DNA of 64,000 bases, from assembly GCA_002269645.1 (NCBI GenBank), contig NIVC01002115.1, positions 62,001 through 126,000 of the forward strand, read 5' to 3'. Position numbers and translations under genes: made by a program. This DNA comes from Macrostomum lignano. Its lineage: Eukaryota. Below the pieces are notes generated by a model, which had not been told where the DNA came from, ran no database searches, and was given only the letters and a program-made list of their open reading frames with translations. Shown in pieces: positions 39,601 through 42,600 of this stretch (positions are counted from its first letter, which is position 1; every line of letters starts with the position of its first letter).

Positions 39601-42600
39601 AGGTCTTTGTTTACTATTTTGACTTTTTTGAAGAGATGTGCTAAAGAATCAACAAGCGTTAATTACTGAGGGGGGGTTTGAGGTTGGCCAATAATCTTAA
39701 TAATATAAAATTCCTGTTGTGTGCAATTCGCCTACTCACAGTAGCCCGACGCAAAAGAGTAGTCGCAATTTTTATCGAATATAATGATCAAATGAAAAGA
39801 CACGCAATTAAAAGTTTAATTAGTTTAATTGTCTTTCTGGTGAAAGTGTGAAAATTTTCTGACTGACTTTTGTCGGTTATTATTAGTAATAATATTATTC
39901 TTTATTGCATTCAAAATTTGTGCATAACCTAAAAGGAAAGACAACGAACAAGACATTAATTAATGAAAACTCAATTGCTTCATTTTGCTTCCTGTTGCTG
40001 GGGGCTTACTCGCTGCTGTGCATGATCAATACGAGCTTATTTTGAATCAATAATTGCTAATAAATTTGAATAGTGCGTGTGTGTGTGTGTAGGTGTTCGA
40101 GTTCTTACTTGCACACGATTTTCATGTTTGCTAAGTTACAGATTTTCTATACATATCGGAGAAGAAAGTGCAAGTTGGTTTAGATTAAGCTTTTAACTTA
40201 TCGCGATTTCCCGCACTCGTGTGTTTTCTAATCTAACGAAAGTCTAGTTAGTAAGTTAGTAGGCTCACACTCTACTCATACTAATTGTAATTTTCATAGC
40301 AGTAGTAGCTGACTGTGTGTTGAATCAGTTAAAAATGTACAATGTCTAACCGCAAACCTTTGCTCTTCCATTTTCCTTTTAAATTTGACTAGCCCGACCG
40401 GGAGCCAACCGCCCAGGAGAAAGCTCAGGAGAAGGCGCTTAAAGAGGCCTTCCAGAAAATTGCCGGCGAAGACATGGAAGTTGACGCTTACGAGCTGCGA
40501 GACATCGTCAATACCGCCTTCCAGAAAGGTAAGTTTAACTTCAATTGCTAGCTGCTTTCAAACTTGTATTTACTAGGTAAATTGAAAAGTTATAACAATA
40601 TGCTTCTACTCTACTTTGGTTAGTAGCTCGATGTGGGCTTTGGTAATACTTTTTTCGAAGACAGTGAAATGATTTATGTTTATGGTAGTTGAGCTGGCTT
40701 ACTTATTAAATTATTATATTAGGCCAATCGTAATGGTTTATTTTATTCATATAAAAGGTAATAAAAGCATTTTGCTTTTTGTGTTGCATATTGATTGTTT
40801 GTATTTTTGTTTGTATTCGACTATTATAATATTTGCTTAGCATTTTTCTGTTTCTGCTTCAAAAAACACGAAAATTGGGTGGCGCTTACACTTTCACGTT
40901 GAAAATACACCACCTTGGTGAAGATTTTTATTTAGCTTTAATTCAAAATCAATAACGAAGCTTCTTTGACATAGCTCTACGAAAACGAAGTTTTCACTGG
41001 GTCCGTGTGTGTTATTCTGGGGGTATAAATAGCTACAAGAGCTGCTACTTAGTTGGTCTGGAGCTCCGCTGGCATCAAGGGGTCACTCTACGGGCGCACA
41101 CATCGCCCTTTAACAAGTCACCCTTGGGAAGGTCTGAGTTCGAGCCCCCGTATCCCCTAGCAGGGGAGCCGCCTCTAATCGAGGGCGCCGGCTGACAGAA
41201 ACGCTTGGGCCATTGGGCTTTGCAAGGAAGCTGGCGACCCAATTACAGTTGGTTGCCAGCTGAGCATTCCGATGGAGACCCAATTGAGACTGGGCTGGTG
41301 GCTGGCCTGTGCAGTGCAATATGCCTTGACAACTCAATTCAGACTACGTAGCGCCAGACCCCAATTTTTATTGCCTTTGCTTCTTGCTTTCTGCTTCAAG
41401 TGATTTGCTCCCTTGGCCTTGTGTTTCTGCCAGGCTGTTTACAACGTCTTTTTCTAATTGTAAACTTTTGTTTGTGAGTAATTAATAATAAAATTAATAA
41501 TAATAATATAACAAATCATTCCAGGCGGTGGTAAGTCAGATTTCATTTGTTACATATGCACGAATAGTCCATTCTGTACTTTTATTACAAGCATATGCCG
41601 AATATAACTCGCAGAATTGCCTGCTCTTTCGGATTGCCTGTTCGTTTCTTGCACTTGGTTTTTTATTGTCTACAAGTCACTAAGTGTTTTGTATAAATTG
41701 TTATCCTTTTGCTTTTCTACTGTCCTATTGTTAAAAACTTGTTTATACTACTGATCACCAAAAACATATTTTGTTATTCGGTGTGTACAAGAATTGTAGA
41801 ACTGTATGTACACTTGTTTTGCTCTGAAATGCTATGAATTTCAGGGACAGGAGCTTAAAGGAGATATCGGTACTCATTGTAGATTAAATGAGGGGTAGAG
41901 GCTTCCACTGAAGGTCACATAGGGGGTAGAGGCTCCCACTGAAGGTTACATGGGGGGTAGAGGCTACCACTGAAGGTTGCATAGGGGTAGAGGCTCCCAC
42001 TGAAGGTCACATGGGGGGGGGTAGAGGCTACCACTGAAGGTCACATAAGGGTAGAGGCTACAACTGAAGGTCACATGGGGGTAGAGGCTACCACTGAAGG
42101 TTGCATGAGGGGTAGAGGCTCCCACTGAGGGTTACATGGGGGTAGAGGCTACCACTGAAGGTCACATGGGGGGGTAGAGGCTCCCACTGAAGGTCACATG
42201 GGGGGGTAGAGGCTACCACTGAAGGTCACATGGGGGGTAGAGGCTACCACTGAAGGTCACATGGGGGGTAGAGGCTACCACTGAAGGTTGCATGAGGGGT
42301 AGAGGCTCCCACTGAGGGTTACATGGGGGTAGAGGCTACCACTGAAGGTCACATGGGGGGTAGAGGCTACCACTGAAGGTCACATGGGGGGTAGAGGCTA
42401 CCACTGAAGGTCACATGGGGGGTAGAGGCTACCACTGAAGGTTGCATGAGGGGTAGAGGCTCCCACTGAGGGTTACATGGGGGTAGAGGCTACCACTGAA
42501 GGTCACATGGGGGGGTAGAGGCTACCACTGAAGGTCACATGGGGGGGGTAGAGGCTACCACTGAAGGTCACATTGGGGGTAGAGGCTACCACTGAAGGTC

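Follow-up and report, generated by a model that had tools for sequence, protein, structure and literature searches.

A nuclear RNase P RNA gene with Pol III-type signals nested in sense within a calpain intron of the flatworm Macrostomum lignano

The stretch of DNA analyzed here, hereafter the window, is a 64-kb segment of the genome of the flatworm Macrostomum lignano (positions 62,001 to 126,000 of contig NIVC01002115.1, forward strand, GenBank assembly GCA_002269645.1), and all coordinates below are counted from its first nucleotide. It carries on its plus strand a calpain gene and, within the sixth intron of that gene, a gene for nuclear ribonuclease P RNA (RNase P RNA; RPR). When the entire window was scanned with the Rfam covariance models, one model alone matched above threshold, RF00009 (RNaseP_nuc, for nuclear RNase P RNA), and its match lies at 41057-41358 (+). 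This match scores 96.1 bits, for a gathering threshold of 28 bits, with an E value of 3e-26, and it spans the whole model (1-301 of 301). A looser Rfam scan of 30000-64000 revealed nothing further beyond RF00009, a search of the window for tRNA genes found none, and six-frame translation of the RPR region yielded no matches in a protein database.

The RF00009 alignment preserves all five conserved regions (CR) of RNase P RNA in their order, that is, CR-I GGGAAGGUCUGAG, CR-II CAGAAA, CR-III UUGAGA, CR-IV AGUGCAAU and CR-V ACUCAAUUCAGACUAC. Helices P1 and P3, as well as the P4 pseudoknot formed by CR-I with CR-V, are all paired in it. Moreover, P1 can be extended beyond the Rfam match by two more G-C pairs, G41055-C41360 and G41056-C41359, and on the basis of the full-length match and this extension we place the RPR coding region at 41055-41364 (+), a length of ~310 nt. 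An unconstrained minimum free energy fold of that segment closes P1 as GGUCUGG/CCAGACC, with a z score of -1.97 relative to shuffled sequences. In base composition, the RPR stands out as an island of 58% GC between intron flanks of 32-34% GC, and its bit score falls within the range (74-203 bits) of 41 other full-length RPR genes that we collected from metagenomes. A first-pass annotation of this DNA, made by a model from the letters alone, had claimed five ordered conserved regions with P1, P3 and P4 pairing; the alignment and the fold bear this out, and the RF00009 search that it had proposed, run here on the window, gave the significant full-length match described above. At the level of sequence, 41055-41364 is thus confirmed as an authentic and intact gene for the nuclear RNase P RNA of M. 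lignano, whose product is predicted to assemble with Pop/Rpp proteins and to cleave pre-tRNAs.

As for the host gene, we mapped the calpain exons by tblastn of calpain homologues and read the splice sites directly from the sequence. Intron 6, which hosts the RPR, covers 40529-44625 (+; 4097 nt). It is preceded by exon 6 (40393-40528, +), which encodes the linker and the start of the penta-EF-hand domain and ends at a G/GTAAGT donor, and it is followed by exon 7 (44626-44832, +), which encodes the EF-hand region with 68-76% identity to homologues in the tblastn matches. The junctions, a donor AAAG/GTAAGT at 40528/40529 and an acceptor CATCAG/AG at 44625/44626, are in phase. In the best full-length homologue the residues of exons 6 and 7 are contiguous, and therefore no exon has been missed between them. 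The RPR start at G41055 lies 526 nt past the donor and 3.26 kb before the acceptor, on the host strand, in good agreement with the earlier placement of about 520 bp into the intron that follows exon 6; the sense orientation, also proposed at that stage, follows from the plus-strand RF00009 match lying within plus-strand calpain exons. Some 2.2 kb of the intron is satellite DNA, in one array of a 31-nt unit (41888-43001) and another of a 43-nt unit (43533-44578).

The RPR is equipped with signals of the type that RNA polymerase III (Pol III) uses. A TATA box, TATAAATA, is found at 41024-41031 (+). Counted from the inferred start at G41055 it occupies -31 to -24, the same placement as in the Pol III-type RPR genes of the metagenome baseline described below; a TATA element had been announced at about -27. 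The start itself is a purine that follows a pyrimidine. At the other end, a run of five T (TTTTT, 41365-41369, +), the presumed Pol III terminator that the first-pass annotation had also pointed out, begins 5 nt past the last pair of P1, and the longest T-run within the RPR is 3 nt, which leaves the gene free of T4 runs. The plus strand of the window contains 41 copies of TATAAA, and once the AT-rich flanks are allowed for, the chance occurrence of one in a placement window of ~10 nt would be roughly a 1-3% event. Manivannan et al. 2015 (PMC4287351) recognize Pol III-type RPRs by a TATA box 21-27 nt upstream and by a 3' poly-T of 4-5, a description that the RPR of the window fits on both counts. 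In TATA placement, oligo-T terminator and freedom from internal T4 runs, it looks as a type-3 Pol III gene should.

Type-3 promoters are also expected to contain a proximal sequence element (PSE), the SNAPc site, ~55-65 nt upstream of the start, and PSEs evolve fast and are lineage-specific. The region in which it should lie, 40990-41013 (+), contains a TCAC at 40994-40997 and a GC-rich patch, CACTGGGTCCGTGTGTG; we regard this region as a candidate by virtue of its position. When the promoters of the metagenome RPR genes are aligned on their TATA boxes, many share an ACCCAYAA.TG-like element ~30 nt upstream of the TATA box. In these genes the spacing is 26-32 nt, and in the window the CAC lies 29 nt upstream of the start of the TATA box, so its position is about right. 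The PSE predicted for the U6 gene of Schistosoma japonicum, GTGCGAATGAGTTATTGAATG (PMC5460494), was tried as a guide and set aside, for it showed no convincing similarity or spacing match in the window. Species-specific U6/7SK consensus sequences were used to find PSEs by Manivannan et al. 2015 (PMC4287351); our search of the literature for M. lignano U6 promoters found nothing relevant.

The metagenome genes also provide a baseline against which the signals can be read. Scanning metagenome contigs with a CR-I to CR-V DNA pattern (an earlier pattern, CR-I plus the P10/11 motif, had given zero matches) produced 80 RPR loci, and Rfam coordinates were obtained for 41 full-length genes. None of the 80 loci is close to the RPR of the window, with which only the universal CR blocks align. 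A T-run of at least 4 begins within 12 nt of the 3' end in 24 of the 41 genes. Of these 24 genes, 14 also have a strict TATA[AT]A between -38 and -26 (counted in model coordinates), versus 0 of the 17 genes that have no such run, several of which carry internal T4 runs. In the Pol III-type genes of this baseline, T-runs of 4 to 11 begin 3-11 nt past the model end. Expressed in the same coordinates, the TATA box of the M. lignano RPR falls at -33 and its T5 at +7, and these features, together with the lack of an internal T4, place it squarely in the class with both a TATA box and a T-run, as far as sequence signals define that class.

Our favored reading, which we hold to be likely, is that this is a canonical RPR gene, independently transcribed by Pol III and incidentally nested in sense in calpain intron 6. 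The host would not be needed, because the gene has a TATA box and a terminator of Pol III type and no T4 interrupts it; Pol III use, the start and stop positions and independence from the host are all deduced from these signals. In such a scenario, the TATA-binding protein (TBP), within a Brf2-type TFIIIB, would bind TATAAATA, probably assisted by a lineage-specific upstream element near -60. Pol III would then initiate at G41055 or G41056 and halt in the T5 run, giving an RNA of ~310-314 nt with mature or near-mature ends. This RNA would fold into the P1/P3/P4 core, join the Pop/Rpp proteins and cleave pre-tRNA leaders. Pol II, for its part, would read through the RPR unit in the calpain pre-mRNA, and the intronic copy would normally be degraded after splicing.

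Several points weigh against this reading. Two concern the signals themselves. First, we built a PSE-like weight matrix from 17 other RPR promoters; it is a cross-taxon profile (ACCCAYAA.TG) that, given the lineage specificity of PSEs, may not represent that of M. lignano. On it the upstream region of the RPR scores -2.85, a value that 79% of random 17-position blocks in the window equal or exceed. Of the TCAC-type element reported earlier at about -57, the motif itself thus stands, at -61 to -58 from G41055, but it can be called a PSE only tentatively, for those four bases are all that matches the vertebrate consensus and the cross-taxon profile does not fit. Second, the AT-rich flanks contain a run of T4 or longer every 61 nt or so, which makes a T5 alone weaker evidence. 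Both points would suit an RPR made by Pol II only and dependent on its host, of the insect and crustacean type, in which the TATA box and the T-run would have arisen by chance in an AT-rich intron. The intronic, sense position would be as expected for such a gene, and ~40% of insect RPRs likewise have some downstream poly-T. However, none of the 17 baseline genes without a T-run has a strict TATA box in the canonical position, the T5 of the window abuts P1, an internal T4 is lacking, and a flatworm is outside the sole clade known for the embedded mode; we hold this reading to be very improbable.

A third point is the sense orientation, which puts the RPR sequence in the host pre-mRNA and means that the spliced intron could contribute to the RNA pool. 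Biogenesis would then be dual: Pol III would transcribe the gene, and Rat1/Xrn2 and the exosome would supply a further share of mature RPR by trimming the spliced-out calpain intron, while the Rpps protect the RNA. Eukaryotes in general share these nucleases and the protection by Rpps, and Palsule et al. 2019 (PMC6797745) have proposed that the two modes coexisted for a time in the ancestor of insects and crustaceans. Yet no sequence feature calls for this second route, the RPR has 526 nt of intron before it and 3.26 kb after it, with satellites dominating the intron as a whole, and its location is not conserved in the other species that we compared. Nor is calpain obviously a high and ubiquitous expresser, which Manivannan et al. 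(PMC4287351) argue that hosts must be. We therefore regard dual biogenesis as unlikely, and it is more doubtful still that Macrostomum, by making RPR through two routes, offers an extant non-arthropod example of the transition state with both modes of Palsule et al. 2019.

The last point is that the M. lignano genome may contain other RPR copies beyond the 64-kb window, because the species probably carries recent large-scale duplication. The functional RPR could then lie elsewhere, the nested copy being a silent or redundant paralogue that is expressed weakly or not at all. Our analysis spans one window of the genome, which leaves room for such a gene, and a 12-nt perfect direct repeat, TTTCTGCTTCAA, found in a repeat search around the RPR at 40851-40862 and 41388-41399 (+), hints at insertion of a cassette. 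The two repeats bracket a 525-bp unit that comprises promoter, RPR and terminator, and they may represent a target-site duplication left by such an insertion. This is a weak lead: repeats of at least 12 nt within 250 nt on each side are seen in 2% of dinucleotide shuffles, but in 27% of controls taken from real sequence of this repeat-rich window. Against a silent paralogue, the 96-bit match shows every conserved region and helix to be preserved, the TATA box and the terminator are intact too, and both the sharpness of the GC island (58% vs. 32-34%) and the lack of internal T4 runs argue for ongoing constraint. We judge this explanation improbable, and thus retain an autonomous Pol III gene at an incidental intronic address as our reading of the locus.

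An incidental address also agrees with what is seen at calpain genes of other species, whose orthologous introns had been suggested as a check. The calpain homologue of Bulinus truncatus has an equivalent intron of similar size (locus L002, 23496-27553), which contains no RPR, and the calpain genes of two other flatworms, Dicrocoelium dendriticum (72 kb) and Hymenolepis diminuta, both covered in full, lack an RPR as well. The Plakobranchus locus (L003) stops short of the equivalent intron. Because all these comparators are distant, with orthology among calpain paralogues unproven, the absences show only that there is no ancient association between calpain and RPR. Conserved nesting is thus not borne out among these species, and we see no sign in the sequences of a conserved host-guest relationship between the two genes. 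The nesting itself is not improbable: the calpain gene spans 46% of the window, nearly all of it intron, and an RPR that landed in an intron would have had a 50% chance of a sense orientation. Nesting of Pol III genes in introns is common, as illustrated by a tRNA gene that lies antisense within the 72-kb calpain gene of D. dendriticum (L004, 6148-6219, minus strand). Such intronic tRNA genes resemble the RPR of the window in being small autonomous Pol III units inside a Pol II gene; they differ in their promoters, which are internal and of type 2, whereas that of the RPR is upstream and of type 3.

How does this gene compare with other animal RPRs? To our knowledge, sense-strand nesting has not been described for any Pol III-type RPR, the sole published intronic case being antisense. 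That case is the RPR of the centipede Strigamia maritima, which, like the one in the window, is Pol III-equipped, lies in an intron of a protein gene and is found outside Pancrustacea. Its antisense orientation sets it apart, since sense nesting in M. lignano means that the host pre-mRNA contains the RPR. More generally, type-3 Pol III RPRs (human RPPH1 and those of molluscs, annelids, chelicerates and myriapods) share with the RPR of the window a TATA box ~25-30 nt upstream, a T4-5 terminator after P1, the absence of internal T-runs and the CR-I to CR-V plus P4 architecture. They also share an RNA made with mature ends, a property that in the present case we infer. They are reported to be intergenic except in Strigamia, whereas the RPR of the window is in sense in an intron, with a PSE that is a candidate only.

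The insect and crustacean RPRs, such as that of Drosophila in ATPsynC, are like the RPR of the window in their intronic, sense position inside a gene transcribed by Pol II. In contrast to it, they have no TATA box, PSE or consistent terminator, are often interrupted by T-runs, and rely on the host promoter together with trimming by Xrn2 and the exosome. The RPR of the window, which belongs to a different phylum, has its TATA box and T5 at canonical positions; the sense intronic location is the feature that it shares with the pancrustacean pattern. According to Manivannan et al. 2015 (PMC4287351), embedding without Pol III signals is found in insects and crustaceans, and all examined non-pancrustacean animals have Pol III-type RPRs; the background that the first-pass annotation gave on free-standing and embedded genes agrees with this. 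Its proposal that the locus combines both states stands insofar as the gene is intronic, in sense and endowed with a TATA box and a T5 run. No mechanistic hybrid is implied, however, for the pancrustacean state consists of a lack of Pol III signals together with dependence on the host promoter (PMC4287351, PMC6797745), and that lack is not seen here. Two further suggestions, an intermediate toward pancrustacean embedding and an independent origin of intron embedding, do not hold either. The former is excluded by taxonomy, the host being a flatworm (Platyhelminthes, Macrostomorpha) and the locus therefore unrelated to the pancrustacean event, and the latter would require host dependence, of which we found no evidence.

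Our search of the literature found no description of RPR gene organization in flatworms, and the locus thus adds a flatworm to the animals whose RPR has Pol III-type signals (TATA box and terminator, with a PSE that is a candidate). It is consistent with intron-dependent RPR biogenesis being confined to insects and crustaceans. Current understanding would be unchanged unless dual biogenesis were shown, and in that regard the locus could be a convenient natural experiment on whether RPR can also be drawn from a spliced intron where a Pol III route exists. M. lignano is competent for transgenesis, and the 525-bp unit might provide a compact promoter and terminator for the production of small RNAs by Pol III in this animal.

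The metagenome survey revealed other arrangements of RPR genes. In two contigs the genes are in tandem, with a spacing of ~730 nt or ~395 nt (L076, at 1-124, 547-853 and 1276-1424; L070, at 241-533 and 636-940), and in a third they form an inverted pair (L082, 1301-1526 on the plus and 6059-6283 on the minus strand). All three are multi-copy RPR loci in eukaryotes. In a further group (L068, L084, L016, L032, L033, L061 and L047), an ACCCAT-type, PSE-like element is accompanied by an A/T box (TTTAAA or TTAAAT), and no T-run lies within 30 nt of the 3' end. Such a combination of signals matches neither of the two classes, Pol III-type and insect-type.

The calpain gene has features of its own. 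The tblastn matches that delimit its exons lie, all on the plus strand, at 15552-15689 (exon 1), 17420-17497 (exon 2), 35170-35688 (exon 3), 36692-36934 (exon 4), 37721-38302 (exon 5), 40402-40545 (exon 6), 44619-44843 (exon 7) and 44965-45150 (exon 8), and gastropod calpains match the encoded protein at 66-69% identity. Taken alone, this similarity suggested gastropod DNA, a reading set aside because ORF2 of the retrotransposon in intron 2, described below, has M. lignano protein matches at 100% identity. Exons are fused relative to those of gastropods. Exon 3, of 173 aa, has at least three exons as its counterparts in Bulinus (L002, 10662-12426) and Plakobranchus (L003, 22004-25658), and exon 7 has three in Bulinus, which suggests either that introns were lost in the flatworm lineage or that gastropods gained them. 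A fully intronless calpain, 67% identical to the protein of the window, is encoded at 10001-12010 of a 402-kb metagenome-assembly contig of the European Nucleotide Archive (ERZ25072999; L001); it is either a retrogene or a gene from an intron-poor eukaryote.

Finally, repeats are abundant elsewhere in the window. Intron 2 of the calpain gene harbors an apparently intact retrotransposon of the type that lacks long terminal repeats (non-LTR; 23936-29022, minus strand), with two open reading frames (ORFs) on the minus strand: ORF1 (27754-29022; 422 aa) and ORF2 (23936-27754; 1272 aa), the latter with endonuclease, reverse transcriptase and RNase H domains. ORF2 matches dozens of M. lignano UniRef proteins at 95-100% identity, and several of the UniRef entries that match this long interspersed nuclear element (LINE) are chimeric gene models that include G protein-coupled receptor, kinase, lectin and other sequences. 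This suggests that the LINE is young, possibly active, present in high copy number and a contaminant of published gene annotation. A long satellite array, which translates as a repeated peptide, is found on both sides of it, at 18947-23865 and 29211-30900, and because the same array flanks both sides, the LINE appears to have inserted into it. Other satellites in the window include those at 76-507, 1180-2042, 5818-8426, 36108-36680, 36936-37670 and 57049-61657.

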